A stretch of 64,000 bases of DNA from Hemiscyllium ocellatum (taxonomy: Eukaryota): assembly GCF_020745735.1 (NCBI RefSeq), contig NC_083426.1:17918001-17982000 (forward strand). The letters are read 5' to 3'. Shown piece by piece: positions 4,701-24,870 of the stretch; positions within the stretch are counted from its first letter, which is position 1, and every line of letters starts with the position of its first letter. The translations under genes and the position numbers were made by a program. The notes beneath the pieces are model-generated. The model did no database searches. It was not told where the DNA came from and saw only the letters and a list, made by a program, of their open reading frames with translations.

Positions 4701-7700
4701 TTATTGGCAATAACCATCAAATCGTTGCCCAGGAAAGTGAAGATGAAGATCTATACATCTCATTTAACAATCTTAAAAAGAGGTAAGTTTATTTTGTTTC
4801 AAATATCTCTGAAGTGCTTTTCTAAATATAATTTTGTTTCTATCATAAAGGTTCTTCTCAAAATATTATCAGAGTAATGAAATCACATTCTTCAAAATGG
4901 GAAATCAGTTTTGGAAAACCATACATGTAAATACCACCAGTTTAAAATTAAATTTGCTTGAGATTTATTGCACTGTACAGAAATGGATCTAAAATAAAAG
5001 GAAGAAATTACTCCATAGAAAACTAATTATAACATCCATTGTGATAATCCAGCTATGGGAAAGTGAAGACTACAGATGCTGGAGATTAGAGTCAAAAAGT
5101 GTGGTGCTGGAAAAGCACAGCTGATCAGGCAACATCCGAGAAGCAGAAGATTCGACGTTTGAGCCTAAGCTCTTTATCAGGAATGTGGGGGAGGTCCAAG
5201 GGGGCTGAGAGATAAATGGGAGGGGGTTGGGGCGAGGGGGAAGATAGCTGGGAATGCCACCGTGGGAAGTGTAAAACCTGCACCCACACCTCCCCATTCA
5301 GCTCCATCCATGGCCCCAAAGGACCCTTCCACATGTAGCAGAGATTTTCCTACACACGTGTCATCTACTGTGTCCGTTGCTCCCATTATGGAGTCCTCTA
5401 CATTGGGGAGACAGAATGCCAACTTGAGAAACGTTTCAGAGAACATCTCTGAAACATACATACTCAACAACCCTCACTGCCCTGTGGCCAAACACATCAA
5501 TTCCCCCTTCCACTCTGTAAGGACATTCAAATCCTTTTCCTCATCTCCCCTCCCCCAACCTTATCCGAGATCCAACCCCCCAAATCAGCACCGCCCTCTT
5601 GGCTGTCCTACCTGTCCATCTTCCTTCCCATCTAGTCGCTCCACCTTCCACTCTGAACTATCACCTTCTCTCCCACCTCCATCTACCTATCGCATTCTCA
5701 GCTATCTTCCCCCTAAGCTCCACCCCCTCCCATTTATCTCTCCCTTGGGCCTCTCCCACATTCCTGATGAAGAGCACATGCTCAAAATGTCAATTCTCCT
5801 GCTCCTCGGATGCTGCTTGACCGGCTGCTTTTCCTGCACCACACACTTTTTGACTCGAATAATCCAACTATGCACTAATTTCAACTCACACAGAAATAAA
5901 TTACAATATATTTCCACATCTCAAACACTACTCAATTAAAGCATGGTCTTTATCCAAACTAAATGTTGTATTATACATTATAATTTTAATCTCTCAGCTT
6001 CATTGTATTGGTGTGCTGCTAATTTAGAAAAAGTTGTAATTATTGCTCTCAATCAGATCTTTCTTTGAGCCTGATTTGTTTTTGTTTAAATAAATTCAAC
6101 ACAAAATTCTAGAAATATCCTGCAGATCTAGCAGCATTTGGAGACAGAGAAACAGAGAGAAAAATTCACTGAGTATTTTATTAAGTGAGATCCAAAGTGT
6201 CTGATCCACCATGGCTCATCGTGACCTTTCTCACACAACCTTCTCGCTTCACCTCATTAAGTAGACAACAGGGCTTTTGGGCAGCCATGTGGTGGGACAG
6301 ACAGAAGCACTCATCACTTGCTGGGATCTTCTTGCATTCTTGCTGCCAGAACTGTATTTAATGTCCAGCCAAACACTACTCAGTTGTTACAAGATTATAA
6401 CTGGAGTGGGAGTGGTCTTTAATGATGTTGGCTGACTCTCTGTGTCGACGAGAAGTGTAGACAGAGTCAAATGGATGTAAGGTTGGTTTGTGTGATGATT
6501 TGGGCTGTGTCCACAACTTTCTGTAGTTTCATTTGGTCCTGGGCAGAGCAATTAACATACCAAGCTGTGATGCATCAGATAGAATACTTTCTATGGTGTA
6601 TAAGTAAAAGTCAGTGAGGATCTTACTTTTTGCTGTTGAACAGTGATGAAACAAATGAACAGTCCTTTCAGACATGAACTATGAATGATCCTTGAACTAT
6701 GACATTGAGTCTGCAGCCAAGGCATTATACTTTCGAGTAGACAACACTGATGCTAAAATCAATTGGTACAGGTTGTGTTAGTGCCTGGCCCATACATATT
6801 ATTACACTTACTCACAACCATCGAGTGTGGATACATAAGCAATAATAATTCACACATCTTCCAAGGGAAATTCTAGATTTCAGATTTTTCAGGGACGTCA
6901 AGACGAGAAGATATAAAATGGACCTGTTGGAAATGTTTGCCTTGCTCTATCTTTGTAGTTCATCAGTCTGAGGTGTCAAAAAGGTGTCATATTTAGAGCC
7001 TATTGTCTCGTAGTAGTCTGTCTGGCCCAAGGATCTTGACAGCAGAATTCTCCAGTATGAGGAAGCAGTGGCAGCTCCCAGGATATCTGTCACAGATCTC
7101 CAAGATTTAGCAATGATGGTCATATGTATTTTAAACATCAATGTACTGAAAGCTTCATCATTTGAGGAACTAAAAAAGTCAGAGGCAGCTGTTATCAAAG
7201 CAACATTGCTGCAACTGACAGTGCCTGCATCTCAGGGAAGTCAGTGATAGTGGAAACTCTCACTGTCCAGCCACCTTCACTCTTCTCATCTTGAATGGCT
7301 CTTGAAGAGCTATGCACTGGAAAATATTACAATAGTTACATTTGGTTGCATTTATAGATCGAGAATGGGGAGATTCCTGGCTGCACCTCGAAATGAACTA
7401 CTTGCTTTAATATTCAGGGCAGATTTGACCTTGACAGTGGCCAGAATGGGATTATCATTTAGTCCTCTAAGCTCAAGTTCTGCTCCAGCAGCCGATCCAG
7501 GCCAATAATAAGAGCACAGGATAGCATTGTCATCATAGTCAATTCAAGATCAGAAAGTGTCCAGCTATGGCAGTCTTCATGTCAGATACTTGAGCAGATG
7601 CTGCCAAAATGAGAACAAATTTTGCTGAAAGGATTCCTGTTGTTCTCACATCCATCACAATGAAGCCTCGTGTTATGCCAATAAACAGTGTGGCATGGAA

Positions 7701-10700
7701 TCTTCCCAAGGATGGTATTGCCATGCCTCGTTAAGGAACTCTGATGTATGCCAACTTATTCAAAAGTGCAACCAACATTTTCATGCTACATTGCAAGAAT
7801 AATTTCTGCCAGTAAGCTAACAAGATGTTCCCATCTCCCTAATCCCCCAACAAGAAGGCAATATTCCACATTTTTGCACACAGACAGCTTACTGTGCCAG
7901 TTCTGAAGGGAATAAAGAGTCAAACACATTACTGCGGGACTCTGGAGTCACATATAGACCAGACCAGGTCAGAATGGCAGATTTTCCTTCCTGAAGGTTT
8001 TATGAAAGTGATGGGTTTTTAAATAATGATGGTAGTTTAATAGTCAGCATTATTGAAAGTAACTTTTAATTTCAGATTTTGCTTAGTGAATTGAATTTAA
8101 ATTCTATCAACTGCCATGGTGGTACTTGAGCCCAGTAATCTCAATCGTCACAGCATTAGGAATCAAAAGATTCAGACTAATGTGTGCAATTCTGGTCTCC
8201 CTCCTATCGGGAGGATGCTGTGAAAATTGAAAGGGTTCAGAAAAGATTTACAAGGACGTTGCCAGGGTTGGAGGATTTGAGCTGTAGGGAGAGGCTGAAC
8301 AGGCTGGGGCTGTTTTCCCTGGAGCGTCAGAGGCTGAAGGGTGACCTTATATACATTTATAAAATCATGAGAGGCATGGATAGGGTAAAAAGACAAGGTT
8401 TTTTTTCCCTGGGGTGGAGGATTCCAGAACTAGAGAACAAAGGTTTAAGATGAAAGGGGAGAATCTTAAAATGGACCTAATGGGCAACTTTTTCACACCG
8501 AGGGTCGTGCACATATGGAGTGAGCTGTCAGAGGAAGTGGTGGAGGCTGGTGCAATTATAACATTTAAAAGGCATCTAGATGGGTACATGAATAGGAAGG
8601 TTTTAAACGGATATGGGACAAGTGTTGGTAAATGGGACTAGATTAGGTTAGGATATCTGGTCGACATGGACAAGTTAGACAGAAGGATCTGTTTCAGTGC
8701 TGTACGTCTCGATGTCTCTATGACTAGTGTAGTGACATTACGATTACACCATTCTGTCAACTAAAACTCTTCAGTTAAAATAATCAATCAAACATGGCAG
8801 ACAATCACTGAGAATGAAATAAAATAAAATAAGGTAATAGTGGACTGAGTGTAGCATGGATTTTGCAGCTGCTCCTGAGTTTCAGACTTATTTTTAGATT
8901 TACTTACAGATTCCTTATATTTGTTACATTTCAGTAGTATAAAATTTTTATTTTGATTTATTTTTAGTTCTTTTATACTCAAAATCAACATTTAGATAAG
9001 TACAAGAAAGAAATGCTTGGACAGATACGGGCCAAGTACAGGCAGGTAGGACTAGTTTAGCTTGAGATTATAGTCAACATGGACCAAAGGGTCCGTTTCT
9101 TTTATCCTATTTCTAGAAAGAATACTGAATTACATAATGGGCTTTATATTCTTTTAAAATTAATTATCATCGCTTCTGATTTTCACAGGAACCCAAACTT
9201 GAAAACACTCTTATCTGTCGGAGGCTGGAATTTTGGAACTGAAAAGTAGGTTTTTTTCTCAGCAGCAATTTTCTACCATTATACAAATGTTATTTCTAAT
9301 CATGATTTGGAGATGCCGGTGTTGGACTGGGGTGTACAAAGTTAAAAATCACACAACACCAGGTTATAGTCCAACAGGTTTAATTGGAAACACACTAGTT
9401 AGTGTGTTTCCACTTAAACCTGTGGGACTATAACCTGGTGTTGTGTGATTTTTAACTATGTTATTTCTACTGTGTTAATGAAATGAGAAATACAGAAATG
9501 TGAGAAACTTCATACCAGAAGAACTGGATAACAGTCCATGTCTACTGGTGATTTTAAAAATATTTAATGCTTTTCTTTGACCTGTTAAAGTGTATTAGCA
9601 GCAATACAGTTAAGAAAAACATTCTTTAGCCAATGGAATCAGGATGTTGTACCGATACAGTTCACGAGTGTTTATCTTAATACATTACTTTAGAGTTCTC
9701 TGAAATTTAAAAGAATGAGAGATGTTGTTTAGCAGTGGACAAAATTTTTTTAGAAAGCTTGACAAGTTAGAAACTGAGAGAATATTTTTCCAGCTGAAGA
9801 GTCTAGAATCGCATAAGATGTTGGTGAGGCCACAACTGTGTATTGGGTGCAGTTCTGCTCACCACATTACAGGAAAGATGGAATTGCTCTGGAGAGAGGG
9901 CAGAGAAGATTTACTAGAATGTTGCCTGGGCTGGAAAATTGTGGCTATGAAGAGAGTTTGGAGAGGTTGGAGTCATTTTCCTTTGAACAAGGAAGGCTGA
10001 GGGGTGACATGATGGAAGTAAACAAAATTGGGAGGCGTAGAGATACAGTAGACATGAGGAACCTGTTTCCTTTGGCATGGAGTTCGAAAAGAAAGGTCAT
10101 AGACTCAAGCTAAATGGCAGGATTAGAGGAGTGTGAGGAAAACCTTTTACACAGAGGATGGTAGGTATCTGGAATTTGTGACCTGTTGGTGGTAGAGGCA
10201 GCAATTCTTTTTAAAAAGACCTGGATCTGCATTTTAAGTTCTGGAAGCTGTAGGGTCATGGTCCATGTGGAGGAAGATGGGATTGGAAAGGGCAGTTAGG
10301 TATCTTTGGGTCAGCCTGGACAAGATAGACTGAATGCCCCCCTTCTGGGATGGATCAATTTCATAGTTCTAATTGAAGACCGTCATCTCAGAACAGTCAA
10401 CAATTTTAAAAAGATTTGAAGAGAAATTTCTTCGCTGCATTTTGTGGATCTTCTGAATTCTCTACTTCAGAGAGCTGTGGACATTCTAATGAGATTACTC
10501 ACAATTGAGATTGATAGAACTTTTGGTACAAAGCAAATTTAGGGATATTGAGAAATACAGCACGAAAGTTAGTAGATGAAGATGTTCAGCATGATCTTAT
10601 CAAAGTGCAATGCAGATCCAATGGAATGTTGTCAACACTTAATTCTGTTTCTTATGCCTTTATATCTTTCAGGTTCACTGCCATGGCTTCCAGCAAAGAT

Positions 10701-13700
10701 ACCCGTCTAATATTCATTAAATCTGTTATAGAATTCCTACGACAAAAAGATTTTGATGGTTTAGATCTACATTGGGAGTACCCAGCATTTAATAGAAGCC
10801 CATACCTGGACAAACAGCGCTTTACTTTGTTGGTTCAGGTGAGTTACATTATACCTTAAATCCATGAGTTATCAGGGGATTCAATCTGTGCAATATGTTT
10901 TAAAAATTAAATACAGATCATACGTATTATATAACAAAAAGACCTATCATCAACTTCTTAATGAGAAAAATCACTAATAATAAATGTCCATGTTTAACAG
11001 TTACATTTGAATTGAATTGAATGATTATTGTCACTTGTATGTAACAAATAAATAGTGAAAAGTGTAAAATGTAGCCATGCTCTGGCACCATTTTGAGTTA
11101 CAGAAGATAACTAGAATATAACTAAAGTCAGAATTCTTTCACCCTATTTGTGCTCTGCTCGAAATTGGAGGGGTGGGGGGGGGGGGGGGGGGGGGGGTGG
11201 CGTTTTCCAGAACAGGTTCCAGTCCATCAACACACTCTTGTATCACAGTCCATTCCAGAAGCCCTGCTCCACTGTTATCGTCACCGTTACTGCGTTCCAG
11301 ATTTACCACATCGGGCCTACCACGCCGCTGCCAATGCAACCACCAGTCCCATCGATCTGCCAAAAGTACCGAATTGGGCCTTCGCATCTCCGCAGCTGAA
11401 GCCCAATATCCTGATTCTGATGCAGATCACTGATGCCACCTTCGCCGCCAACTGCAAGGGCTTCTCTGCTTTCACTGCCATATTGAAAGCAGTGCCACTG
11501 ACACTGTCTTGAGTCCTGCACTGGTTGACCCATCAACATTAATGTCACTACACTCTGGCAGTATCTGTCACTGCTGGGCCCACACTCGTTGCCTCTCACC
11601 AAGCAGACAACTCTTACTGCCATTGCTGTACATGCTCAGAATATTGGGCCCAGCTTTGCTCTTCTCAAGGCACCAAAAAGGCTTTTAAAGCAGAAACGAG
11701 AAGGAAAAATGAAAGAGAGCAAAAGTAAAAAGAGAAAATTAAAAAAGAAATCAGACGGAAGTGGATGAGACTTGGGCTAGGAGCTTAGATGCAACACTGC
11801 CAGTCTGCTGCCATCTTGATTTGGCAACAAGAATTCAACTCTTAACTCACAAAAATAGATGATTTATAGCATGTCAGAGGTTAAGATGAAAGAATTCTAC
11901 CAAGGGATTTGAACCATCTCAAACCTGCTTTTATTAGAAATGATACAAGGATACAGCTTTGTTTTTAAATGCAAAGTACATACCTTCATTCTAATAGATT
12001 TTTCAAAGTAGCTGAGTCTCCTAGACCTGGGGAATTCAGCAACTTTAATAAAGCAAGATGTGCAAGGTAAGTGCCATAATAGTTTCTGCTTAGGGGCGGA
12101 GCGGGCAAGTTTTCTCTCGACATGACATTCTAGCTAATTAAACAGCCATTGCCTAGGATTTCTCTGATTCCACATGTTCCCCATCACACACACACACCTG
12201 TGATTATAAAACTCCTCCTGACCAGAATTGTCAGATTGTACCACTGCATTTACCCACTTCAGTCAACCCACCTGAAATGTGTCAACAGGCCAGAACCCCA
12301 CAAAAAATTTAAATCAACCCTGTAACCAAATTCTGCAAGACATTGAGGAAACCCATTTGAGTTCTCCAAAGTTGCAACATTTATGCCCCTGCCACAGAAT
12401 AAACTTTGCTCCTGAGGCATAAATCCAGGCCAATGTGATTTATGCAAGTATGTTGCAGATTGGACATAGAGTCAAGCTGCCAGAGGAATCAGTTGGAGGC
12501 TAGTACAACAACAACAATTAAAAGGCATCTGGATGGGTATATAGACAGGACGGGAATAGAGGGATATGGGCCCAATGCTGGCAAATGGGACTAGATCGGT
12601 TTAGGATATCTGATTGGCATGGACAATTGGACAGAAGGGTCTGTTTCTGTGCTGTATAACTCTATGATAGGAAAGGGTCATGTGATTTTTTTTTGAAAAA
12701 TAGCGTTATCTTTGCCTATGGTGTTGATAAGCCCTTTAAAATGCATTATTCAAAATTTGTAAATGTGTTTTATGTTAAAGCACATTTTCATTTCAGATAT
12801 TGCACTCACATCCAAATTCACTTGACACCTGGACATTCCGGTTCTACCCCAAGGTTTGACTTTATATTTAAAGGCCCATAATGATTCATCAGTTGTGTAT
12901 TTTCCTGCAATTGCATACCATAGCTACGTTTTAATTAGATTAGATTAGACTTACAGTGTGGAAACAGGCCCTTCGGCCCAACAAGTCCACACCGACCCGC
13001 CGAAGCGCAACCCACCCATTCCCCTACATTTACCCCTTACCTAACACTACGGGCAATTTAGCATGGCCAATTCACCTGACCCGCACATCTTTGGACTGTG
13101 GGAGGAAACCGGAGCACCCGGAGGAAACCCACGCAGACATGGGGAGAACGTGCAAACTCCACACAGTCTGTCGCCTGAGTCGGGAATTGAACCCGGGTCT
13201 CAGGCGCTGTGAGGCAGCAGTGCTAGCCACCGTGCCGCCCAAGAAAGTGATTTTATAGTGACTGAGAATTTCAAACCATAGTCCATTCTCTGGGTATTTT
13301 AAATAGTTAACCTACCTTCTCCAGCAAAGCATTTGCTACAGCCTTCCCAATACCCAACCATGAAACAGTATAATTGCCAGTGCAGTCATACACTTTCCCC
13401 CCAAATAAAGGAATCCCTGGAACCTGACCAATCTCATTTCAAATTACCTCACTCCCTTCCCCCAGGACTCTTCTTCTCCCTCACTCTACCCATTGCCTTC
13501 TACAAGTTTACCCTTTTTTCTCTTTCTATCCCTTTTATCTCATTTCATTTTGGGACATTTATTCTCTTGTCCTCTTCGCTTCCCCTTTTATTTCACCAAT
13601 CACCAAAAGCCATTGGACAAGTGGGAACAAAATCAAAAAGGCTAATAAAGTATCAACCTTTATACCAAAAGTTTTAAATACAAGTGATGCATCCCTTCTC

Positions 13701-16700
13701 CAAAGTCTGGGTCACACAGATTGTTGGGACACAATCTAAATTGGCCAGAATCATACCAGGACGTAACAGATTAATTATAAAATCAGATTATAGAAACATT
13801 TCTTGCATTCCCTGGAGTTTAGATGATTGGAGGATGCCGTAATTTCAAAAGTCAGTAATGAAAATATGAAAGAATGCTCTCCTGAGATGAGGCACTTTTC
13901 CCCATCAGGGAATCAACATTGAAAACCCTTGTCCTCATCCTGCATCTAAGGAGAAACATCTGTTTGAAAGTTGCCTGAAAGATCAGCAGCCCTGTCTTCT
14001 ACTGCCTCAGGATGACGTATTTCAGTGAACAGGTGTTGAAATATGCTGAAAATGCAATACATTTGAAAATATAATATCCAATGTTCCATTGTGATAATCC
14101 TTTCATCAAATTTATTATATGTTAACATATAGGAAACTTTTGAAGAGTTCAAGAAGGAATCTGGTGAAAATAACAAACCGAGATTGCTGCTTTCAGCTGC
14201 AGTGGCATCTGGCATAAGAAACATTCAAGCAGGCTATGAAATAGAAAAGATTTCAGAGTATGTACAAGCTACTTATGTGACGTACATTTTCCAACTGATG
14301 CAGTCTGCATTTCATCGTACTCTAAATTTAGTAACTACATTCCTGACAATAACAACCAAGACATTGAATAAGTGCAATATTTCTACTGTACTGAATAGAA
14401 ACTTTCAAAAGTCAGATACATGATAAAACTTCTGAACCAAAGGGTTAGGTGTTGTAGATTAAATATTTTGGCACTGGGCACTAAACAGCAGAATAAATAG
14501 GGTTAGGGAACAACTGGATTCAGTTTTAACGAAGGATTATATCGAAATTTATAACCAGAAGCCAGGAGTATAGGTTTGACTTTGACAAACAACTAAACTT
14601 GGTGAGTGTACTGAAACAAAAACGCGACGTAGAACTTTATAGGAGGTGGAGGCTGTGGGTTGTGGAGAGTCGTGTGGCAAAATCAGGCAAGTGTGGCCGG
14701 GGGCATCTTGTTGGGAGCACATCATCCTTTATGCTTTTCACAAGCTATGTTGAGAGATTCTTGCAAGGGAGTGGCAATTTGCCAACTGACAGTCAGTAAT
14801 GCTGGTTAAATGCCTTTTTAACAGCCCAACTTGCCTCATTAATATTCAAACTCCCATCTTACCAAACAAGCCTGACAAGGGGAAAACTCAATAGAAAATC
14901 AAAGTGGGTCCCTGGCTCTCTGCTGGCAGCAAGGGACCTTCATGTTGGACACTGGGCATCAACACTTCAAAGCATGCTCCAAGGGCATTGGCCACATGTA
15001 TGCCACGTCCACAGAAATTAGCATCCAACATGTGCCAGGCTTTAAGCACCCTCTTGGCACATCTCGGGTCCACTTACAGGACACTTTTACACGTCACAGC
15101 TGCACTGGCAACTGTGTTTATAATGCTGTAGCAAAGGCAATGTGTGTTCAGAAACACAAGCCCAGCTCATGGACAGGACTAGACTGCACCTTTGGGCCCT
15201 TTGCTTGCTCGGTGTCTACCGGATACTCAAAGCCTCGCTTTGCCTCTTTGCACTTTGCCCCCTCAGCCAGAGATACCAGGCTGACATTACTGTCACTTTG
15301 TCTTGCTGGTTGGCGCAGATACAAATTCAGTAAGCTGGCTTTAGTTGCCAGCAAGCCTCAGTCAAGTCTAGGGAGATAGCTTCCATTCAGCAACACCTGA
15401 CACCATAAGTCAAGATCACTCTCTGATACCAGTTCAGGCTTTGCCTGGATATTCAGTCAGGATCCTGTTCTCAGGCAGCCCACCAACTTCTCTTGACTCT
15501 TTCTGCCCAGTTGGAGTTGCCTTCGTCCTGGCATGAGAAAGAGAGAGAGAGAGCGAAAGAGAGAGAGGGAGAAAAAGAGAGGAATTACATGAGATGTAAG
15601 TAAATGGCACAGCTGTTCCTATTGGTGCAGGTGAGAAAGTGTCCCAAGTTGGTGAGTAGGAAGTGTAGAGGATATGTAGTGTTCATGGTTTTCAGGAGGT
15701 GACAGAGGCTAAGGCAGGATATTACAAACAATACTGAGAGTGATACAGCGTGAGATTTGGTGGGAAGTGAGTACAGTAGCAGAGATAGTGTGAATATTAG
15801 GTATCTGAGAGATGGCGGTATTTACCTCAGCAGAGAGGAAAAGGACATTGGCCCCTTCCCTATATTATTGTGCATTTCTCCAGGCAGCTGATACTGCACT
15901 TACCCAGGTGTCAATCACTCTTGGCACAGTCTGGTGTTGGAGCGGCGACTGCTGATCTTGAGGGAAGAGAAGTCCTGCATTGGTACTATCCAACCAACAG
16001 GACCTCCACGAACCTACACACAAACCAGTAGTTGATTTCCCTGTCTGCTATGTCTGGGGCAAATATGAGGATTCATGCAGGGCAGCTCAACAGTGCTGGT
16101 CCATGTACACCATGAGCCCAGGCCCAAGGCTTGCTGATCTTTTGGTGGTTTTTGGCTAAACAGCAAGTTTTTACAGGAACAATGTGTAGTAAAATGGGGC
16201 AGAAATCATCTGAGAGACTCCATTTGAGAGGGATGTTTTTGGCAATTAATGAGACATTGGAAAGACAAGGCAAGAAAATTCACTGAGCCTTATGGGGACA
16301 AACCCTCCCAAAAACCCAATGCAACCCAAACTTTGTCAAAAAACAAAAGAAATATCCAGCCCGTAGTGAGAAAGAAACTCAGCAAGTGTGCCAGCATCCA
16401 TGGAGAAAAAAAAAACAAAGTTAACGGAGTCCATTTTGACTCTTCTTCAAAAATTGTTGATGAGTAACTGGCCTTTTCCTGTTCCTTACAATTCTCATTT
16501 GATAATGTATAAGCTATGAAACATAATAAATAAATTACAGATTTAGAGACAGCAGGAAGATAATCATTGCTATTCTTCATCACTGGTTGGGTCAATGTAT
16601 GCAGCACACATGTCCTTGAGTACCAGCCCCAACATCTTATTTTTGTTTTATATAGGCCCCTAGATTTTATCGGTGTGATGACATATGAATTCCACGGACC

Positions 16701-19700
16701 ATGGGATGTTACAACTGGACCAAATAGCCCCCTGTACAGAAGTTCTACTGATTATTATGACATTAAATACTTTAACGTTGTATGTATAAAAACTAAGAGA
16801 ATCATTTCTACATTTTAATTTTTCTAACGTTCATTTGAATCATTAATGCAAATTTAAAATGTTACTTCAAATAATATGTTTTCCTTGTAGGAATTTGCTA
16901 CAAACTACTGGAAAGAAAATGGTGCCCCTGCAGAAAAACTACTGGTTGGATTTCCAACTTATGGCCGTACCTTTACACTCTGTTCAGCTGATAACAAACC
17001 TGGTGCTGCAGCATGTGGTCCTGCATCACCTGGAAATTGTACTAAAGCAGCTGGTATTTGGGCATACTATGAGGTACGGTTTAACATTTTATATTTAAAA
17101 ACTTATGTCAACATCTTGCATCATAACATTCACACGAAGAAACTTTAGCACTCGTCATATAAATCATGAAAATTAAAGCTACCGCAACTCTGATTACAAC
17201 AGAAGTCTGTTGTATTACCATGTCCTGACTTTGCAACAGCCCGCAGATTTAAAAAAAAGCATCTTTAATTACCAGAATCATGCCATCTACCACAGAGATA
17301 TCCTTACCATGATCATCATGAAATATTAACATTGTTGTAAAAAGGAACTTGCTGTCACTTTGTTTCATTTTGCACTACTCAGGATAGAATTGCAAGAATA
17401 TCAAACTTCAAAGGGAACAACAATAAATACTGGAATTTCCAGCTTAAATAGAAAATCTCTATCAAGATTTGCACCACCAAACAATTATTTAACTACCAAA
17501 TAATGAAGCCTTAACAGAAGTGTTATACATTTACCATAATTGCATTCAATGTTTTCGTCAATTAGAGTAAGAAGATATACTATAATCCAGAGGAAGTGCC
17601 TGGGTTAAAATAAGTTAAACAATGAGTAGATAAAATCATATTTCTCCCTCAATCTATAATCAATCTATTCATCAGTTGCACAATGACTTTCATTTGTAAG
17701 CAAGTTGTTTAAATGAAATCCGTTGAGTACATAAGCTAAAGATTTGCCCCTTTATCCTCTATTCTTTTCCTCCTACCTGCCCTTTGCATTCTCTGAATTT
17801 CATCCATTGCAGGGTATAAGCAGATATCAGTTCAGTGTTGCTCTTTTACCTTCATATGGAAACAACGGAACGTTATCAGTAATTGAGTCTAACCCATCAT
17901 CTGCAAACCAACTTCCCAGTTCGGTGAACATAACCATAACTATAAATGGAAGCATCCTTGTGAAACGGATTAATGACACTAAATTTGTAATCAGTTACTA
18001 AACTTTGCTATTTGTAATCTAATTCATATGATTTGTCTGGTGGTGTTTTGGGGTCTTAGTTATCCATTATATTTATTAATGACTTAGGCAATGGGTTAGA
18101 AGCCATTTTTGTTTTCAAATTTACTAATGATGGAAAGATTGTAATCAATATAGACAGAAGAAAATTTTGATGCAGTAAGTGAAGAGGCAGGACCATGGAA
18201 AATGGATTTTACCATAAGCAAATGTGAGCTTCAGACCTCAAAATGGTAGAAGAGGGTGGTGTCAAAAAGTTGAAAGTTTAGTAACTGTGGAAGACAAAGA
18301 GAGTTTCAAATCCAGAGATTATCTCCTTTAACAAATCATTGTAACATCTTGAACACCTTGATTAGATCACTTCCCAATCTTCCATTTTCAACAGAATATA
18401 ATTTGTGCTTTGCAGCTTCAGGATGGCACAGAAGAGTATTAGCTCCCATAACCTACTTGTGCCTCAGTTGTAAACTGTACACATTTTTGTTAACAGATAT
18501 GTGACTTCTTGAAAGGCGCCAAAGAAGAGTGGATGGAGGAGCAGGAGGTTCCATATGCATATAAAGATGATGAGTGGGTTACTTATGATAATTTGAAGAG
18601 TTTTGAGAAAAAAGTATGTATTTTACAGTCATTTTCTGCTGCATTTAAGCAATTGTACATAATTAATCCACCTGTGTACACAGTCAGTTTAACAATTGGC
18701 TTAGATATAGTTTAATTAAACAGCTAGCAGGAAAGTAGAGAGAGTTCATGAGAAAGCATTAGCAGGTACAATTAAGGAAAACCCAAAGGATTTTTAAAAA
18801 ATATATGTAAAGAGCAAGAGAATAACGAGGGAAAATGTAGGACCCATTTGGAACCATTAGAGGTAATCTGTGTGGGACCCAGAATACATGGACACAATTC
18901 TCAATGAATACTTTGCACTGCTCTTACAATAGAAAAGGACAACATAGACATCATGTCGGAAGACTGTGAAATGTTAGAAGAAATTAGCATAAAGGAAAAT
19001 TAGCAATGTTAGCAGCTTTAAAAGTGGATAAATCTGTAGGCTCAGCATCCCAGTCTATTGAGGGAGACACCCTGGCCACAAGTGAGGTTTCAGAGGAGCT
19101 AAGGACTACAAAGTTGTCAATTCATTTTCAAAAAGGAAAGCATAGATCAAGAAATTACAAGCCAGTCAGTTCAACCTCAATGGTGAGAAGGTAATAGCAC
19201 AAATTCCAAGGTATAGAATATATTTACACTTGGGCATACACAGATTAATCAGGGATAGTCAGCTTGGATTTAAGCAATTTCCACATGTGACAAATTTGAG
19301 AAATTAAACAGGAATATTGATGAGGGTGATGCATTTGATGTGATCTACATGGACTTTAGCAAGACTTCTGATATGGTCCAAAAAGAATTGAAACAAACTG
19401 TGGATGCTGTAAATCAGAAACAAAACCAGAAATGGCTGGAAAAGCTCCGCAGGTCTGGCAGCATCTGTGAAGAGAAATCAGAGTTAATGTTTTGAATGCC
19501 AATTCTGAGGAAAGGTCAGCGGAACTTAAATGTTAACTTTCCACACGATCCCTCAGGGCAGACTGGTGAAGAAAGAAAAAGCCCATCAAATCCAAGGCAA
19601 AATGACAATGTTGGATCCAAACGTGGCTGAGAAGCAGCAAGTAAAGGGCGATAATAGAGAGATATTTCTGTGACTGCAAGTTTGTTTTCAGTGGGAGTCC

Positions 19701-22700
19701 ACAAGACTCGCTGCTGGAACTCCTGCTGATTGCAGTGTACATGAATGATTTGGACTTAATTGCAGGGAGTCTGATGAAGGAGTTTGTGAATTACACAAAA
19801 TTAAACTCATGACCACAACAATAAGTGGAATTCAACCTGAAAAAGTAAGAGGTCTAACAAGGCAAGGAATTACATTATGAAAGGCAGATCCCCGGAAAGG
19901 ACTGAAAATCAGGTGGACATATGTGTGTGTCCATTGATCCCGGGAGGTATCAAGACAGGTAGTTAAAAAGGTAGATGAGATACTTGCCTTTATTAGGCAA
20001 GGCATATAATATGAGAGTAAAGAGGATATGCTGGAACTGTACAAATGTTGGTTAAGTCACAGATAAAGTGCTGATGCAGTTTAGTTTATGGGAAGGACTA
20101 AAGAGGGTCCAGAATGCTACCTGAACTATAGGGAAAGATTAGACTGTCTGGGATTGTTTTCCTTGGAACAATAAAGATTAAGAGGCTACCTCAAGGAGGT
20201 GTATAAGATTGTGAAGGGCATCGATCGGGTGGATTGGAAAGCATGTTTTCATTAGTAGAGGCGTCAATAACTTTAAGGTAAGAAGTAGAAGGCTAATAGG
20301 ACAGTTGACAATTATTTTACATTCAGAGGGAGGAGGAAGTCTAGAACTCTTCATCTGAAAGTGTGTTTGAATCAAAAAGAACTCTGGTAACATTGAAGTA
20401 AAAATTAGGATATTCACTTGTGTTGCCATAATCTCAGCTGAAAATGGGACTACTTGTTGAGTGACACATGTATGATGGGTTGAATGGCCTCCTCTGTACT
20501 GTAAACATCTGTGTATCAACAAACTTATAACTCTAAGTTCATACCCATGTTGCTTCCAAAGGCATTGATGACTAGATTTCCTTTTTAATTGTGTTTAATA
20601 ACTTTTGTTTTCTGTAATGTTGCTCTGAATGCTTAGTAATACTAGCTAGTAATATAGATACTAGATAGTATTATGGATAATAAAGAAAACAACAAGTTGC
20701 TGTTTATTTGGAAGCATCCAGTCCCTCAGTTTCCCATCACTTCCTAAAGGCTTATCCGTAGCACTCAGTATCTGAGCATCAGCATTGTGTGAGCCAAGAG
20801 AGCAAGTACTCACAATATAGACTGGCAGATGTTTGTGACAGAATCAAGGCAGATAGAATTAAGATTTAGAACAATCATGATCTAACAATAGCAAAATAAG
20901 TTAGGAAGGACACACATGCTGATGCTTTCTGCAAAGAGTCACTAAAACAATAAAAATTTAATTTCTCCGTGTGCTTGCTTAGTGTTCTCCAGTGTGCATC
21001 ACCTGTTATGTGATTGGATTCTGGAACCATTCTGACCAATGAGATCCACGAGAGGCCGTGCACTTGATATCATGAAAACATCTAATTTTGTAGCTGAAAT
21101 AAAGACTAACCCTTGAACTGCATATGATGGTATTACACAGTAATAGTGGTCCACAAGAAGAGTCCATTCTGACTAAATAGAATGCTTTAAATTCTTTTTA
21201 CATAGGTGGAATGGCTAAAAAACAATAGCTTTGGTGGTGCAATGGTTTGGACAATCGACATGGATGATTCCAAAGGTACTTTCTGTAAGCAAGGAAAATC
21301 ACCCCTCATTAGTAAGCTGAAGATTATGCTTTCTTCAAAATCTAAACCTAAAGATGATTCATCAGGTAATTTATTATTTCATGCAACTTTTCTGAACCAG
21401 ATAAATATTTGTTAAGCTGAAACGCAACTCATTTCGATGCACTTGTTTGTCTATTCTAAAATCCATTACCATAACTATTTCTATAACCTCAACTATATGG
21501 ACAGATACAGGCATGTTTTTAAAATGCTACTCATTCAATAAAATTAAATATATTCATGCACTAATATCATATTAAAAAATTAATGGCAAAATAATACCAT
21601 AAGTTTTCACACTGTGGTAACCATGAATACTGATGTGGCACATTAGCGATTCCCTTGTGGAGATCCAAGCACAATGTTGCTCAGTACATAACAATGATCT
21701 CTAAATTGAGAAAATTTTCCAATCTTCCCATCACATTTAATGATGTTACTATTGCCGAATCTCCCCCACCAACTATCAACATTTGGGAGGCCACTCTCAA
21801 CTAGGAATAGAACTAGACCAGTCATATAAACAGTGTGTGTAAGGACATTTTCTCCTGACCGGGTCTGAAAACTCAGGAGGCAGGCAGGATTCTGGCAAGT
21901 GGAAGACTTTTATTCAAGCAGAAACCAGTTAATGCAGGGAGAGGGCCAAAGGATCTTCCCCTGAGACTGGCCTCAGAAGGGAGATCCATGACACACTCGA
22001 ATTTGTAGAGTAAAAAGCAGTGTTTTATACATTTATACTCCATAACATGGGTTACAGTCCTTCCCCCATAATCCATATACCCAATCCTGTAAAACATCTA
22101 ATCAATGCTGGGCATCCCTAAGGACAGTCCCACGAGCCATTATCTCATGGCATTAATGGACACTACAATCGCTAGATCTTTATAGGCATCCCATTCATTT
22201 GCATTCCAAAGTACTCTACTGGGTCTGTTTCAGACTGGCTTATCTCTAAGGACAGCTTGAATTTTGTTATTCACTGTATTTCATCTAATTACTCTTCTTC
22301 AATTTTGAACTATCCTAACTATATGGAAAAATACAAAAAAGTCAGAGTTTTAACTAATTACTATAAGATTTGAAATATTGGCTTGTAATATGAAGTTTGT
22401 TATAAACTGTAAAGTAGACATATATATCACACAGCTATTTGTACCCTTAGTACTTTGTGATTAATGGGCTTTGAACAATCTATATTTTTCAGGTGTCTGA
22501 GAAGGGCATTTCTGAAAGCTAATTAACTTTCACATATTGGCATAAGTATTTTGATTATATGTACCTAGTTTTGTTGAAAACTATCCCTGTAATTCTCTGC
22601 AGAATCTTTAACTAGAACCTATTGCTTAATATTGTGAGTAATTAACTTCAAAGAAACAACTATTTACGACAAAATTACTAACTGCTGTTCTGGTAGCTGT

Positions 22701-24870
22701 TTAGGGAGTTAACAGGCCATGTATTGCACCTGGTGCTCATTCATTTACTGGGACAATTATTCTTTCATTAATGATGCTGGGCATACTCTTATCAAAACGG
22801 TCTGGAAAAGTGTACACAAAGGTTCTTTTACTGGCCTTGGAATAGTTCAGTTCAAAGGTGTTATTGTTTTCTTTACTTAAAGGCAGAAACAGACTGTTTG
22901 TCTTATTCGTCTCCTGTTAACCATCTTCTGATTTAATGCTCGGGCAGGCTGCCTTTCTGACAGCCATTTTGTGTAAGCAGACATGGGCTGTTCTGTTATA
23001 AGCAGATACGGGTCATCCCTACAGTGTGGCTATAAAAATCAGTCAGAAGCTGTCAATTTTACAGTGAGTAACTCATTCCCTTACTCCCCAAACCTTATCT
23101 TCCATCTACAAGACAAGCCAGAACTGTGAGAGTGCTCTCTTTACTTGCCTGGATGAGTGCTCAAGCAGCACAAAACCATTCAGGATAAAGTAGTCGATCA
23201 ATGACAACACTCTCTTAAGCACTGGCTTGTTCTACCAATGATGCAGGGGCAGCAACATGTACCATCTATAAGTGCAATGCAACAGCTCACTCAGCATCAA
23301 GTGGAGAACCTTTAATGTTCAGTGAAATAGCAAAGTTATTTTATGTTTTCTTACATTTTCAAGTACATGACTCTACCGCGTGGAAGGATTAGGACAGCAG
23401 GCATTAGGGAACACCACTGAGTACAAATTCTTTTCTGACATACATCAGATACCAACAAGAAAATAGAAATTTAAATGGCACTCAGACTGGCCAGGTGAAA
23501 ATCTGTCCTGTTTGTTCCTTATAAAGCACGATCATGAGGAACTCTTAATCAGTTTCTAATGTGGACTCACAAATCTGCCTTAAATTTGATGACTCTAGTT
23601 ACAGGCCATGCTATGGAAAAGACACATAGATGTACTAAAAATGCCATTCTGGGAGATTCTGCTGAGGCATACTAGTTTAAGCAAGTACTTGAAAATGTAA
23701 GAAAACAAAGTAACTTTGCTATTTCACTGAACATTAAGAGTCTGTGGCTCGTTGGTCTAGGGGTATGATTCTCGCTTTGGGTGTTAGGCTAGGTGGATTT
23801 GAGAGAGATCCTGGATTCAAATCCTGATCAAGCCCCTATTTCTGGGCGGCACAGTGGTTAGTACTGCTGCCTCACAGTGCCAGAGACCCTGGTTCAATTC
23901 CCGCCTCAGGCGACTGACTATATGGAGTTTGCACATTCTCCTCATGTCTGCGTGGGTTTCCTCCCACAGACCAAAAATGTGCAGGTTAAGTGAATTGACC
24001 ATGCTAAATTGCCCGTAGTGTTAGGTAAAGGGGTAAATGTAGGGGAATGGATCTGGGTGGGTTGCGGGTCGGTGTGGAGTTGTTGGTCGAAGGGCCTGTT
24101 TCCACACTGTAAGTAATCTAATCTAATTCAAGGTTCGCCACTTCAGTACGTTCATTATGTCATTCCATAAATGTCAACCCTTTGACCAAGCTTTTATTTG
24201 TCAATCTAAAATGTCTCAATATAGCTCAGTGCCCTCTCCGCTTGGGATGTTTTAAGATAGTAATATTTACCTCCATGTCAACTTCAATATATTGGCTTTC
24301 TTTCTTTCAGCCACAACAACTGTATCACCGACCCCTACTTTAGAAAATTCATCAAACTCTCAGCCTTCTACAACATGCCCCAATCTGGAATTCTGCAGTG
24401 ACAAAAATAATGGTAGCTATCCAATTTCATGTGCTGCGGACAGCTTTTATCGATGCACCAACAAAAACACTGACATCGAGAACTGTCCCAAGGGTACTTC
24501 CTATAACGCAATTAAAGGCAAATGTGTTTGGCCAGAAAGATTATTTCCAGCAATCAATTTAGTAGCCAACAACTTTTGCAAAGGGAAGCGTGATGGTAAC
24601 TATGCAATTCCAACTCCCAAATATTTTAGATGCTCTGCTGATAAAACACGAATAAAGCAATGTCCTCCTGATCTACTCTATAATACAATGAACAGAAACT
24701 GTGACAGAAGTATGGTTGCTGACTTTGATGTTACTTTTTGCAGCAACAACCTTGATGGTACTTACCCAATTCCAGGCAAGCCAAACAAATTCTATCACTG
24801 TTCCAATAAGGAGACTATTATTGGGAATTGCCCCAAGGGAAGTGTTTATAATAATTTATGTAAGTGTTAG
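1737..24870 (+). CDS. Spliced GH18 chitinase / chitinase-like gene (CHIA/CHIT1 family), 11 coding exons, about 585 aa: signal peptide, GH18 domain, S/T linker, 3x CBM14
   Basis: Exons 1737-1761, 1940-1972, 4575-4782, 9189-9245, 10673-10838, 14133-14257, 16656-16779, 16891-17073, 18497-18613, 21206-21365, 24311-24870. All are GT-AG, phases are consistent, and they total 1758 nt with no internal stop. Motifs [53 protein letters not shown]. Exon sizes 25/57/166/125/124 match the recalled CHIA layout. Exact orthology not established. Confidence 0.95.
1940..1972 (+). CDS. Chitinase exon 2 (signal peptide [11 protein letters not shown])
   Basis: Acceptor TTATTTTAG, donor GTAAGC, hydrophobic stretch, phase 1-1. 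Confidence 0.85.
2652..3201. mobile_element. Penelope-like element fragment with inverted pseudo-LTRs and an 11-bp TSD
   Basis: Arms 2661-2820 and about 2996-3155 are inverted; the middle encodes [26 protein letters not shown] (GIY-YIG C-terminal region) on -; ACATTAAAATG at 2652-2662 and 3191-3201. Confidence 0.85.
2701..2740 (-). ncRNA. Hammerhead motif, slightly decayed (inverted partner at 3076-3115 on +)
   Basis: GCA-CTGAGGA-T-GTCACC-TAGACA-GGGGAC-GAA-ACAT-C-TGC; the partner keeps ACGT but has AAA for GAA. Confidence 0.6.
4575..4782 (+). CDS. Chitinase exon 3 ([42 protein letters not shown]...NNLKKR)
   Basis: GH18 N-terminal motif, CAG acceptor (in-frame alternative AG at 4579-4580), donor GTAAGT. 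Confidence 0.93.
5044..5872. mobile_element. Penelope-like element fragment with inverted ends and a 14-bp TSD
   Basis: [20 protein letters not shown] (GIY-YIG) at about 5390-5450; inverted arms 5066-5240 and 5690-5857; ATAATCCA(G/A)CTATG at 5044-5057 and 5859-5872. Confidence 0.85.
8175..8725 (+). mobile_element. CR1 LINE 3' fragment
   Basis: QFWSPSY...ERVQKRFTR...LGLFSLE...[14 protein letters not shown]. Confidence 0.88.
9189..9245 (+). CDS. Chitinase exon 4 ([19 protein letters not shown])
   Basis: SxGG motif, 57-nt exon, AG/GT boundaries. Confidence 0.95.
9287..9469. mobile_element. Short Penelope-derived foldback insertion with a 12-bp TSD
   Basis: Near-perfect palindrome 9340-9457; ATGTTATTTCTA at 9287-9298 and 9458-9469; same family as 29300-29394 and 32331-32422. 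Confidence 0.85.
9810..10375 (+). mobile_element. CR1 LINE 3' fragment
   Basis: [28 protein letters not shown]. Confidence 0.8.
10673..10838 (+). CDS. Chitinase exon 5 (catalytic motif [11 protein letters not shown])
   Basis: 166-nt exon, acceptor TTTCAG, donor GTGAGT. Confidence 0.95.
11027..11820 (-). mobile_element. Non-autonomous LINE-like element containing a long G run
   Basis: Minus strand starts CAAGATGGC and ends with an (ATTCA)n tail; G run at about 11175-11197. Confidence 0.4.
12934..13240 (-). mobile_element. tRNA-derived SINE (HE1-like / V-SINE)
   Basis: tRNA-like head with A and B boxes, GCTAAATTGCCC core, (TCTAA)n tail; near-identical copies at 23844 and 27413. Confidence 0.85.
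14133..14257 (+). CDS. Chitinase exon 6 ([27 protein letters not shown]...GYEIEKIS)
   Basis: RLLLSAAV motif, 125 nt, AG/GT boundaries. Confidence 0.95.
15535..15582. repeat. Imperfect (GA)n microsatellite
   Basis: Directly visible. Confidence 0.85.
16656..16779 (+). CDS. Chitinase exon 7 ([16 protein letters not shown]...NSPLY...FNV)
   Basis: 124 nt, AG/GT boundaries, MTYxFHG motif. Confidence 0.95.
16891..17073 (+). CDS. Chitinase exon 8 ([28 protein letters not shown]...GIWAYYE)
   Basis: Canonical GAPAEKL and GFPTYG motifs, AG/GT boundaries. Confidence 0.95.
18497..18613 (+). CDS. Chitinase exon 9 (ICDFLKGA...[24 protein letters not shown])
   Basis: VPYAYK and WVxYDN motifs, AG/GT boundaries. 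Confidence 0.95.
18720..20520 (+). mobile_element. Degraded CR1 LINE with a nested short Penelope-derived element (about 19385-19545)
   Basis: LKVDKS, NYKPVS and VIYMDFSK-like remnants. Confidence 0.7.
21206..21365 (+). CDS. Chitinase exon 10 ([27 protein letters not shown]...)
   Basis: GGAMVW motif, AG/GT boundaries. Confidence 0.95.
21838..23023 (-). mobile_element. Solo LTR (1186 bp) with a 5-bp TSD, inserted into an older LINE fragment
   Basis: TGTAAGGA...TCCCTACA inverted termini; GTGTG at 21833-21837 and 23024-23028; minus-strand AATAAA near 21910. Confidence 0.7.
23746..23836 (+). tRNA. tRNA-Pro(TGG) gene or pseudogene with an 18-nt insert at the canonical 37/38 intron position
   Basis: 5' half GGCTCGTTGGTCTAGGGGTATGATTCTCGCTTTGGG matches vertebrate tRNA-Pro; insert 23782-23799; 3' half TGAGAGAGATCCTGGATTCAAATCCTGATCAAGCCC has about 8 substitutions; no encoded CCA. 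Confidence 0.8.
23844..24126 (+). mobile_element. tRNA-derived SINE (HE1-like / V-SINE)
   Basis: Same family as 12934-13240; GGTTCAATTCC B box; AATCT tail. Confidence 0.85.
24311..24870 (+). CDS. Chitinase exon 11: S/T-rich linker and three tandem CBM14 (ChtBD2) domains
   Basis: Three FC-x5-G-x-Y...Y/F-x-C-x9-CP units starting at 24391, 24574 and 24736; acceptor TTTCTTTCAG; TAG at 24868-24870. Confidence 0.9.

Follow-up and report, generated by a model that had tools for sequence, protein, structure and literature searches.

The window, by which we mean the whole 64,000-nucleotide stretch of Hemiscyllium ocellatum DNA that was analysed, contains a chitinase-like gene on its forward strand (Table 1). 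In the explanation that we consider probable as a whole, this is an intact gene of the secreted GH18 chitinase family with 11 coding exons and a 585 aa product, and positions 24311-24870 are its true last coding exon. All 11 exons have ag/gt borders (for coding exon 1, a gt donor was read at 1762), and the spliced coding sequence translates into 585 aa with a signal peptide, 96% identical to Chiloscyllium punctatum XP_072419793. The frame of the terminal exon is open from the acceptor, ag followed by CC at 24311, to the TAG at 24868-24870, with 186 intact codons. A GH18 HMM matched eight exons of the window, and the GH18 domain was recognised by Pfam (PF00704, E 1e-97, scored on the 96%-identical Chiloscyllium orthologue). 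A six-frame HMM scan of the window found no CBM14 elsewhere. Splicing of exon 10 to the terminal exon in Hemiscyllium is predicted from orthologue models and canonical splice sites.

Table 1. Coding exons, CBM14 repeats and polyadenylation signal of the GH18 gene, in window positions.
Feature	Position	Strand	Content and evidence
Coding exon 1	1737..1761	+	Start codon and first 8 signal-peptide residues; tblastn with Chiloscyllium orthologue and RefSeq Hemiscyllium model
Coding exon 2 (33 nt)	1940..1972	+	Signal-peptide hydrophobic core; ag/gt borders; tblastn; skipped by public RefSeq model
Coding exon 3	4575..4782	+	GH18 domain start; GH18 HMM match
Coding exon 4	9189..9245	+	GH18, SxGG motif; tblastn
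Coding exon 5	10673..10838	+	GH18 catalytic motif, DGLDLHWE; tblastn
Coding exon 6	14133..14257	+	GH18; tblastn
Coding exon 7	16656..16779	+	GH18, MTYEF replacing MxYD; tblastn
Coding exon 8	16891..17073	+	GH18; tblastn
Coding exon 9	18497..18613	+	GH18; tblastn
Coding exon 10	21206..21365	+	GH18 end and linker start; tblastn
Terminal coding exon	24311..24870	+	Ser/Thr/Pro-rich linker, three CBM14, stop; open frame, Pfam, 95% identity to Chiloscyllium tail
CBM14 repeat 1 and upstream Cys	24376..24534	+	Residues 422-474; six Cys; Pfam E 3e-9
Repeat 1-2 connector, WPxRLFPxxxL	24532..24573	+	Conserved; low pLDDT
CBM14 repeat 2	24574..24711	+	Residues 488-533; four Cys; Pfam E 3.4e-8
CBM14 repeat 3	24736..24867	+	Residues 542-585; chitinase-type, ends CKC; Pfam E 4.3e-8
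Polyadenylation signal AATAAA	24908..24913	+	38 nt past stop

The public RefSeq model for Hemiscyllium, XP_060700995.1, is 389 aa long; in place of the CBM14 tail, it has an alternative one of 15 residues, encoded by another, short 3′ exon (21795-21842), and it also skips exon 2 of the signal peptide. GT-AG borders were sought at its alternative junction and none were found. Because of the skipped exon and this junction, the public model looks faulty. Inclusion of exon 2 restores 21 N-terminal residues, 21 of 21 identical to Chiloscyllium, and the corrected model gains both the three-module tail and the missing part of the signal peptide. One explanation for the omission of the terminal exon from the public model is that this exon survives in Hemiscyllium only as a remnant that is decaying or unused, and its words are likewise absent from two probable Hemiscyllium RNA runs. 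We regard this explanation as extremely improbable. The exon retains its full frame, its high identity to Chiloscyllium, 15 of 15 cysteines, a canonical acceptor and a downstream poly(A) signal, and the model that omits it is itself questionable. The two RNA runs also lack exon 3, and thus the gene was simply unsampled there. In three related organisms, exon 3 and the terminal exon co-occur in the same small runs (79-287 million letters, far below the coverage of a shark genome), and a search of sister runs from the same studies found neither exon. This co-occurrence is an indirect sign of expression.

The preliminary description had read three tandem CBM14 domains in the terminal exon, and this reading held. 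The repeats lie in one frame at 24391-24531 (47 aa), 24574-24702 (43 aa) and 24736-24867 (44 aa), and each was recognised by Pfam PF01607 when scored singly (33.6-37.3 bits, relative to a cut-off of 22.1 bits); the whole exon gave an E-value of 2.8e-24 in 3 stretches. In Hemiscyllium, any two of the repeats are 33-52% identical. The residues by which the repeats had been told apart also recurred across species. Cys-[VL]-Trp-Pro occurs in repeat 1 only and is invariant in 13 of 13 orthologues, as are an extra internal cysteine of this repeat and another cysteine 6 residues upstream, and a CKC ending is confined to repeat 3 in 12 of the 13 species, Callorhinchus having RKF. Within the connector between repeats 1 and 2, alignment positions W56, P57, R59, P62 and L66 are invariant; the connector is probably flexible, since its pLDDT is low.

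In CHIT1, the disulfides are C420-C440, C450-C463 and C460-C462 (PMC4844120), and loss of Trp465 impairs chitin binding most (PMC4844120, PMC5459812). At the sequence level, all four cysteines of the two universal disulfides (C420-C440 and C450-C463) are present with the right spacing in repeats 1 and 2. Repeat 1 appears to combine these cysteines with Cys-x-Trp and an added cysteine pair. Repeat 2 is limited to the minimal set of four cysteines, with a variable polar residue at the position of the Trp after the last Cys. Repeat 3 matches positions 1-40 of the 53 in the PF01607 profile and stops at CKC, before the sixth Cys and the Trp; therefore, its last Cys is missing, its cysteine number is odd and one universal disulfide is unable to form. 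The surface Trp two residues past the last Cys is found in repeat 1 and is absent from repeats 2 and 3. The disulfide pairing of the tail, and hence the identity of its putative 'free' cysteine, is predicted from this cysteine pattern.

In the textbook view, vertebrate chitinases are 'one catalytic domain, one binding module' proteins. The earlier statement that CHIA/CHIT1-type chitinases carry a single CBM14 was borne out as a rule, with 90 of the fetched single-GH18 proteins having one module and 18 having none, and the salmon chitinases, 10 of 10, are likewise reported to have a single C-terminal CBM14 (PMC10234404). The three-module tail, in contrast, has been kept by a chimaera as well as by sharks and rays; with few exceptions, the remaining vertebrate chitinases have one module. 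GH18 plus three CBM14 was found in all 10 orthologues scanned with Pfam, which represent 5 sharks (Rhincodon, Mustelus, Scyliorhinus, Heterodontus and Heptranchias), 4 batoids (Rhinoraja, Narcine, Pristis and Hypanus) and Callorhinchus. The array is joined to GH18 in 13 of 13 species, which separates it from peritrophins and other multi-CBM14 matrix proteins, defined by CBM14 arrays, with or without mucin domains, and by having no catalytic domain.

The triple-tail orthologues form a single clade with 100% support, separate from other chondrichthyan chitinases, and in the domain tree each of the three repeats forms its own orthologous group across species, with the cysteine pattern kept per repeat. 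In the three other species with genomic DNA (Rhinoraja, Heptranchias and Pristis), the tail is one contiguous exon. Fifteen cysteines of the tail show no variation among the 12 elasmobranchs; Callorhinchus shares 13 of them. NG86 pairwise dN/dS values, for which dS is partly saturated in shark-ray pairs, were 0.09-0.33 for the tail and 0.07-0.20 for GH18; among the repeats, they were 0.12-0.55 for repeat 1, 0.13-0.43 for repeat 2 and, in 3 of 6 pairs with estimable dS, 0.05-0.18 for repeat 3. Repeat 3 also has the lowest dN of the three and is the most conserved repeat despite its truncation. We conclude, as part of the overall explanation that we judge probable, that the triple array predates the split between chimaeras and sharks/rays and has been kept since then, module by module, by purifying selection and in a single exon. 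Chimaeras and sharks/rays diverged >350 million years ago. A whole vertebrate class keeps a three-module chitinase with a fixed cysteine pattern per module.

Intra-exonic duplication had been proposed as the origin of the array, and it is compatible with the data and unproven for repeat 2. Repeats 1 and 3 are sisters in the domain tree (SH-aLRT 95), and the best outside matches of repeat 3 are canonical chitinase modules ending CKCC-x-W; as a further part of the explanation to which we give better than even odds as a whole, repeat 3 descends from an ordinary chitinase binding module, shortened before the last Cys and Trp. The closest outside matches of repeat 2 are repeats of fish multi-CBM14 proteins. 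Alternatively, repeat 2, perhaps together with repeat 1, could have been captured from a multi-CBM14 gene resembling peritrophins; genes of this kind persist in lamprey, hagfish, bichir and teleosts. Several observations point in this direction: the repeat 2 profile had a top-10 mean of 51.6 bits on fish multi-CBM14 repeats compared with 34.4 on canonical chitinase modules, the free domain tree placed repeat 2 among Polypterus, Myxine and Pungitius repeats (supports 82-90), the four-cysteine pattern is common to both, and the best non-orthologous matches of the whole tail are annotated cbd-1-like, chondroitin proteoglycan-2-like and mucin-like. However, a single clade of all three repeats was not rejected by the AU test (p 0.84), and the constrained tree had the better likelihood. 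Because only ~50 columns were available and repeat 2 has a long stem branch (0.59), its placement may reflect attraction. In addition, the spacing from C3 to the last Cys is 12 residues in all three repeats, which share one exon with no introns between them. We therefore consider capture unlikely.

In GH18 chemistry, the third Asp of the catalytic motif and the Asp of MxYD assist the acetamido group of the substrate. All 12 elasmobranch sequences have DGLDLHWE and MTYEF, in which the third Asp is changed to His and the MxYD Asp to Glu, and the window gene accordingly departs from both DxxDxDxE and MxYD. The catalytic Glu is present in all species, including Hemiscyllium. The gene also differs from chitinase-like lectins such as CHI3L1/YKL-40, in which the Glu is lost and CBM14 is absent, in having this Glu and three CBM14. 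Callorhinchus has NGLDLDWE and MTYDF, with a canonical third Asp and Glu, and the same triple tail, which there probably accompanies an active site. Thus, the tail is older than the His change, and the suggested coupling of the tail to an impaired active site is weakened.

AlphaFold2 (AF2) modelled the tail as three small beta-modules with the small distorted beta-sandwich typical of CBM14, at moderate confidence (mean pLDDT 69; repeat 1, the best-predicted part, 84-92; repeat 2, 53-63). Foldseek aligned the tail with the binding module of human CHIT1 (5hbf, 49 columns aligned at rmsd 1.0) and also matched the CHIT1 NMR structure 6so0, tachycitin, Der p 23 and Avr4 (5hbf, 6so0, 1dqc, 4zce and 4z4a: prob 1.00, rmsd 1.0-2.6, 43-54 columns). 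The best match for the whole tail was EHEP of Aplysia kurodai (PDB 8in6/8in3, E 9e-10 to ~1e-9), the only solved structure with three serial CBM14. EHEP and Der p 23 are CBM14 proteins without chitin binding (PMC10619976), which raises the possibility that the shark array binds a non-chitin ligand, such as another glycan (e.g. hyaluronan, which the CHIT1 module also binds; PMC5459812), a polyphenol or a protein partner. The strong conservation of repeat 3, the repeat least fit for canonical chitin binding, is consistent with such a ligand. We nevertheless consider this possibility very unlikely. The EHEP match reflects three serial CBM14 rather than a shared arrangement (TM 0.27, rmsd 15, 18-19% identity), and the domain arrangements are not superposable; EHEP stands alone, has a six-cysteine set per module in a compact triangular arrangement and binds phlorotannin. 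Moreover, Cys-x-Trp-Pro is retained in repeat 1 together with the Pro/Gly loop residues that matter in CHIT1, and in every species the array is attached to a GH18 domain with a chitin cleft.

We propose, as the most likely mechanism, that the tail would anchor the GH18 domain to chitin or to material bearing chito-oligosaccharides, with repeat 1 as the putative canonical binder and repeats 2 and 3 as candidate specialised spacer or secondary-contact modules. One unpaired cysteine may link the protein covalently to a further copy of itself or to a different matrix protein. The multivalent chitin binding envisaged in the preliminary description is doubtful, because neither repeat 2 nor repeat 3 has the key Trp and a Cys of one universal disulfide is also missing from repeat 3; by analogy with CHIT1 (PMC4844120, PMC5459812), both should be poor chitin binders.

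Published work reports chitin in the chondrichthyan electrosensory gel and in fish guts (cited in PMC10234404, PMC8379299, PMC6109156), and the gene is therefore a concrete candidate for endogenous chitin handling. A role in which the triple tail and its unpaired cysteine make the protein a multivalent, disulfide-linked organiser of endogenous chitin (e.g. by cross-linking chitin in a gut barrier membrane or in the ampullae-of-Lorenzini gel), and in which the His-variant GH18 binds or slowly trims chains rather than digesting them, seems to us quite unlikely. Alternatively, the protein could be a plain digestive chitinase of the stomach or intestine, with no scaffold, sensor or lectin role, whose extra modules strengthen binding to crystalline dietary chitin, as in insect multi-modular chitinases; PMC11402056 describes insect multi-CBM14 chitinases as degrading chitin. 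Consistent with this idea, the catalytic Glu is universally retained, GH18 is under strong constraint, the presence of the gene in some small runs per study fits a tissue-restricted secreted enzyme, and the canonical D-x-D-x-E core and MTYD that accompany the tail in Callorhinchus indicate that the enzyme in which the architecture originated was probably active. On the other hand, both Asp residues are substituted in all 12 elasmobranch sequences, two of the three modules lack the dominant binding Trp of the CHIT1 type, and other chondrichthyan paralogues with one canonical module could serve digestion. A plain digestive function is thus possible, although on balance somewhat unlikely.

Comparison with known systems shows which features are shared. 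Like CHIA and CHIT1, the shark protein has a signal peptide, a GH18 domain (55-60% identical) and a hinge and binding module in one last exon, and its repeat 3 belongs to their module type, with the C-K-C hairpin and the same cysteine spacing. It differs from them in having three modules instead of one, in ending before the sixth Cys and the Trp-Asn needed for CHIT1 binding, in the elasmobranch DGLDLHWE and MTYEF motifs and in belonging to a separate long-stem clade of chondrichthyan sequences only. An N-terminal GH18 followed by tandem CBM14, with an altered catalytic motif, is likewise found in percomorph fish (Cottoperca gobio XP_029291330, Channa argus XP_067381966 and Siganus canaliculatus KAM3617867/KAM3617137). 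However, these proteins have a dead motif, DGLN[IL]DWR, in which the catalytic Glu kept in sharks is Arg, carry 3-31 C-terminal CBM14, and arose independently, being nested among chitotriosidase-like chitinases of teleosts and distant from the shark clade. Their arrays differ in repeat number and include near-identical repeats, a sign of recent expansion, whereas the shark array is fixed at three ancient, distinct modules. The canonical-site chimaera, the His-variant sharks and rays and the dead-site, many-module teleost form together provide a natural experiment on extra CBM14.

Tandem four-cysteine CBM14, 30-39% identical to the shark tail, also occur in fish multi-CBM14 proteins (Polypterus, Lampetra, Myxine, Channa and Pungitius) and invertebrate peritrophins, but these lack GH18 and have 7 to 30+ repeats, in contrast to the GH18 and exactly three repeats of the shark protein. 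Insect group II chitinases (Cht10 or Cht7 type) similarly combine GH18 with several CBM14; they differ in having several catalytic domains with interspersed modules and in serving the turnover of cuticle. The outgroup of the GH18 tree, made up of arthropod, echinoderm and mollusc sequences, lies outside the vertebrate clade to which the shark gene belongs.

One GH18 gene of 11 coding exons, with ag/gt at every internal exon border, was placed on the + strand from motif searches, from fragments between stop codons and from tblastn queried with the orthologue of Chiloscyllium punctatum (XP_072419793.1). The spliced coding sequence (1758 nt) yields a 585-residue protein, encoded in full within the window, whose signal peptide is divided between two mini-exons and is followed in order by a GH18 domain, a hinge rich in Ser, Thr and Pro and three CBM14 modules (R1, R2 and R3, together the tail); an AATAAA 38 nt past the TAG fits the assigned terminal exon. 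The product is 96% identical to the Chiloscyllium protein, which was used in its place for remote searches. The RefSeq model for Hemiscyllium ocellatum (XP_060700995.1, 389 aa) lacks the 33-nt exon 2 and ends in a 15-residue tail from 21795-21842 in place of the CBM14 exon, and no GT-AG borders were found for this alternative junction (21290-21842). We conclude that the public annotation of Hemiscyllium misses the triple-CBM14 tail, which the models of close relatives have.

Coding exons of the GH18 gene and CBM14 modules of its terminal exon (window coordinates)
Feature	Coordinates	Strand	Remark
Coding exon 1	1737-1761	+	part of split signal peptide
Coding exon 2	1940-1972	+	33 nt; signal peptide
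Coding exon 3	4575-4782	+	
Coding exon 4	9189-9245	+	
Coding exon 5	10673-10838	+	
Coding exon 6	14133-14257	+	
Coding exon 7	16656-16779	+	
Coding exon 8	16891-17073	+	
Coding exon 9	18497-18613	+	
Coding exon 10	21206-21365	+	
Coding exon 11	24311-24870	+	terminal; CBM14 exon
R1, CBM14	24391-24531	+	Pfam PF01607, interval translated alone, E 3e-9
R2, CBM14	24574-24702	+	Pfam PF01607, interval translated alone, E 3.4e-8
R3, CBM14	24736-24867	+	Pfam PF01607, interval translated alone, E 4.3e-8

The preliminary description had proposed three CBM14 repeats in this exon, and the profile searches bear it out. Positions 24256-24867 (+ strand) form a single uninterrupted reading frame, the three intervals, R2 and R3 included, each exceeded the curated cut-off of Pfam CBM_14 (PF01607), and the whole terminal exon matched the same profile in three stretches (E 2.8e-24). 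The modules are 33-52% identical to one another in Hemiscyllium, and a home-built CBM14 HMM run against the entire 64 kb translated in six frames found no CBM14 besides these three. Chance Cys-rich sequence as the source of the repeats is ruled out by the Pfam matches.

The module of human CHIT1 contains the disulfides C420-C440, C450-C463 and C460-C462, the first two of which are universal in CBM14; all its cysteines are required for chitin binding, and removal of Trp465-Asn466 abolishes binding (PMC4844120). In alanine scanning of CHIT1, Trp465, Leu454 and Pro451 ranked highest in importance (PMC5459812). When mapped onto CHIT1, R1 had both universal pairs and the Cys-x-Trp and lacked the vicinal hairpin pair; R2 had the two universal pairs only, with a variable polar residue at the Trp position; and R3 combined the first of the universal pairs with the C-K-C hairpin specific to chitinases, its chain ending before the sixth cysteine and the Trp. 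The residue differences noted earlier were reproduced: Cys-Val-Trp-Pro, with its Trp after the C-terminal Cys, was confined to R1, the C-terminal Cys-Lys-Cys was confined to R3, and R1 has two extra cysteines, one internal and one six residues upstream, which presumably pair together. Because the R3 chain stops where it does, its third cysteine (residue 573, 24829-24831) is left without a canonical partner, as it is in every species by the CHIT1 disulfide map. The tail (24376-24867) has 15 cysteines in elasmobranchs and 13 in Callorhinchus, whose R3 ends RKF and hence lacks two C-terminal cysteines; the GH18 domain has 8. Since the total is odd, one cysteine in every species is predicted to be free or intermolecularly bonded, making one free thiol or intermolecular disulfide per protein possible from these counts.

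An AF2 model of the tail, of moderate quality (mean pLDDT 69; R1 84-92, R3 73-81, R2 53-63, connectors <50), supports three separate small beta-modules joined by flexible connectors. Foldseek matched single modules to CHIT1 (5hbf), 6so0, tachycitin, Der p 23 and Avr4, and the whole modelled tail to EHEP, a three-CBM14 protein of Aplysia.

A word-indexed search with the Chiloscyllium protein recovered full-length orthologues (556-587 aa) from five further sharks (Rhincodon, Mustelus, Scyliorhinus, Heterodontus and Heptranchias), four batoids (Rhinoraja, Narcine, Pristis and Hypanus) and one chimaera (Callorhinchus milii, V9KD90). By Pfam all 10 carry a GH18 domain and exactly three CBM14 stretches. 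In the GH18 tree the orthologues formed one clade (100% support) on a long stem, apart from the usual chitinases with one module that the same species carry; GH18 identity was at least 69% within the clade and at most about 59% to sequences outside it. The tail aligned colinearly among the orthologues, with the R1 Trp-Pro and all 15 tail cysteines (13 of them in Callorhinchus) conserved, and the connector between R1 and R2 (24532-24573, W-P-x-R-L-F-P-x-x-x-L, core W-P-x-R-[LF]-x-P) was as conserved as the modules across 13 species despite being predicted disordered. In the domain tree R1, R2 and R3 each formed their own orthologous group (supports 89, 99 and 85), so the triplication is older than the split between chimaeras and sharks and rays, which took place well over 350 million years ago. 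The single-exon layout is ancestral too, because in genomic DNA of Rhinoraja, Heptranchias and Pristis 182-189 C-terminal residues are unbroken and preceded by a pyrimidine-rich acceptor.

Pairwise Nei-Gojobori dN/dS among four species (dS reached saturation for part of the shark-ray comparisons) was 0.09-0.33 for the whole tail, 0.12-0.55 for R1, 0.13-0.43 for R2 and 0.05-0.18 for R3 (dS estimable in only 3 of 6 pairs), compared with 0.07-0.20 for the GH18 domain and 0.27-0.89 for the hinge. Purifying selection therefore acts on all three modules, and R3 is the most constrained. On this selection, together with the intact 585-residue splice product and the conservation of the tail, we reject the idea of a pseudo-exon.

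Intra-exonic duplication, suggested in the preliminary description, is the simplest reading of the array and is uncontradicted by the data. R1 and R3 were sisters in the free domain tree (support 95), which placed R2 among repeats of Polypterus, Myxine and Pungitius. The best outside matches of R3 were canonical chitinase modules ending CKCC-x-W and those of R2 were fish multi-CBM14 repeats (top-10 mean of 51.6 bits, versus 34.4 bits on chitinase modules), with R1 intermediate. The R2 scores and tree position would fit R2 having been captured from another, peritrophin-like gene, an alternative that bears on origin alone and can go together with each of the functional readings. However, a tree constrained to an R1+R2+R3 clade had no lower likelihood (AU p 0.84), the domain tree has about 50 columns only and R2 sits on a long stem branch; the placement of R2 with fish multi-CBM14 proteins is thus unreliable, we claim no capture event, and we regard one as improbable. 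The tail's best non-orthologous matches were stand-alone CBM14 arrays of jawless and ray-finned fishes; among the 20 of the best 150 matches identified by name, none was such an array from a cartilaginous fish. These proteins, from Polypterus (P0002), Lampetra planeri (P0005), Myxine glutinosa (P0004), Channa (P0019/P0012) and Pungitius (P0010), have 7 to >20 CBM14 repeats, look secreted and are annotated as cbd-1-like, chondroitin proteoglycan-2-like or mucin-like.

A single CBM14, which the preliminary description had given for CHIA and CHIT1, proved to be the rule in proteins of that type. Among the fetched single-GH18 proteins, 90 had one CBM14 and 18 had none, and those with at least three were the chondrichthyan clade, a set from percomorph teleosts and a few isolated cases, namely one protein from a metagenome, its three modules N-terminal, and one from Polypterus with 22. 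In salmon, each of the 10 chitinases is described as having a single CBM14 at its C-terminus (PMC10234404), which with our survey rules out a multi-CBM14 tail as the norm in active fish chitinases. The Polypterus senegalus protein (P0396, 'CHIT1 protein, partial', 1692 aa), in which a partial GH18 domain with the motif DGLDLNWM comes after the 22 modules, lay on a very long branch of the GH18 tree and is probably a fusion of two adjacent gene models. A 412-aa protein named chitinase from the percomorph Anabas testudineus (P0021) matched the shark tail in three stretches. In the literature searched, no three-module chondrichthyan chitinase was described; a stomach chitinase of the blue shark, which may be this paralogue or another, has been published (Suzuki et al. 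2014, as referenced by PMC4728518). The orthologues are already known as automatic 'acidic mammalian chitinase-like' predictions.

The percomorph proteins, from Cottoperca gobio (P0135/P0161-P0163, three CBM14), Channa argus (P0149/P0402, four) and Siganus canaliculatus (P0007 and P0390; 16 in one, 31 in the other), resemble the shark gene in joining an altered GH18 domain to a CBM14 array. Unlike it, they read DGLN[IL]DWR or DGINLDWR, with the catalytic Glu replaced by Arg (a motif search of the 31-module Siganus protein found nothing), and they nest within the teleost chitotriosidase-like chitinases. Some of their repeats are near-identical, and the percomorph combination is an invention independent of, and more recent than, that of the shark clade. 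The combination of altered GH18 and CBM14 array thus recurs, as this convergence shows.

The preliminary description had tentatively joined the impaired active site to the array in a scaffold or sensor role, a joint reading which the data do not require. DGLDLHWE and M[TS]YEF occurred in all 12 elasmobranch sequences, the first reading NGLDLHWE in Hypanus, whereas Callorhinchus V9KD90 has the triple tail with NGLDLDWE and MTYDF and keeps the canonical third Asp. The His/Glu changes are thus confined to sharks and rays and the tail is older than they are; at first it went with a probably active enzyme. A plain digestive enzyme, with the extra modules adding affinity, is a less likely account that we nevertheless weigh seriously. 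We favor, with some confidence, a conserved substrate-targeting tail on a secreted GH18 protein, in which canonical binding of chitin would fall to R1, the other two modules would be specialised, and the unpaired cysteine may form a covalent linkage. The strong conservation of R2 and R3 argues for a role other than classical Trp-stacking; that the tail binds a ligand other than chitin is, in our judgment, quite unlikely. A role for the tail in a gut barrier or in the ampullae is a hypothesis.

Of the sequence words sampled, 21-35% of those from the terminal exon and 23-65% of those from exon 3, which lies 20 kb upstream, were present in five small runs of 79-287 million letters each, from three related organisms and four studies, and neither exon was present in other runs of the same studies. 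Transcripts of close relatives, restricted by tissue, are the inferred source of this pattern, which genomic DNA would explain less well. We consider it highly improbable that the terminal exon is unused. The Callorhinchus sequence V9KD90 is presumably an entry from a transcriptome project.
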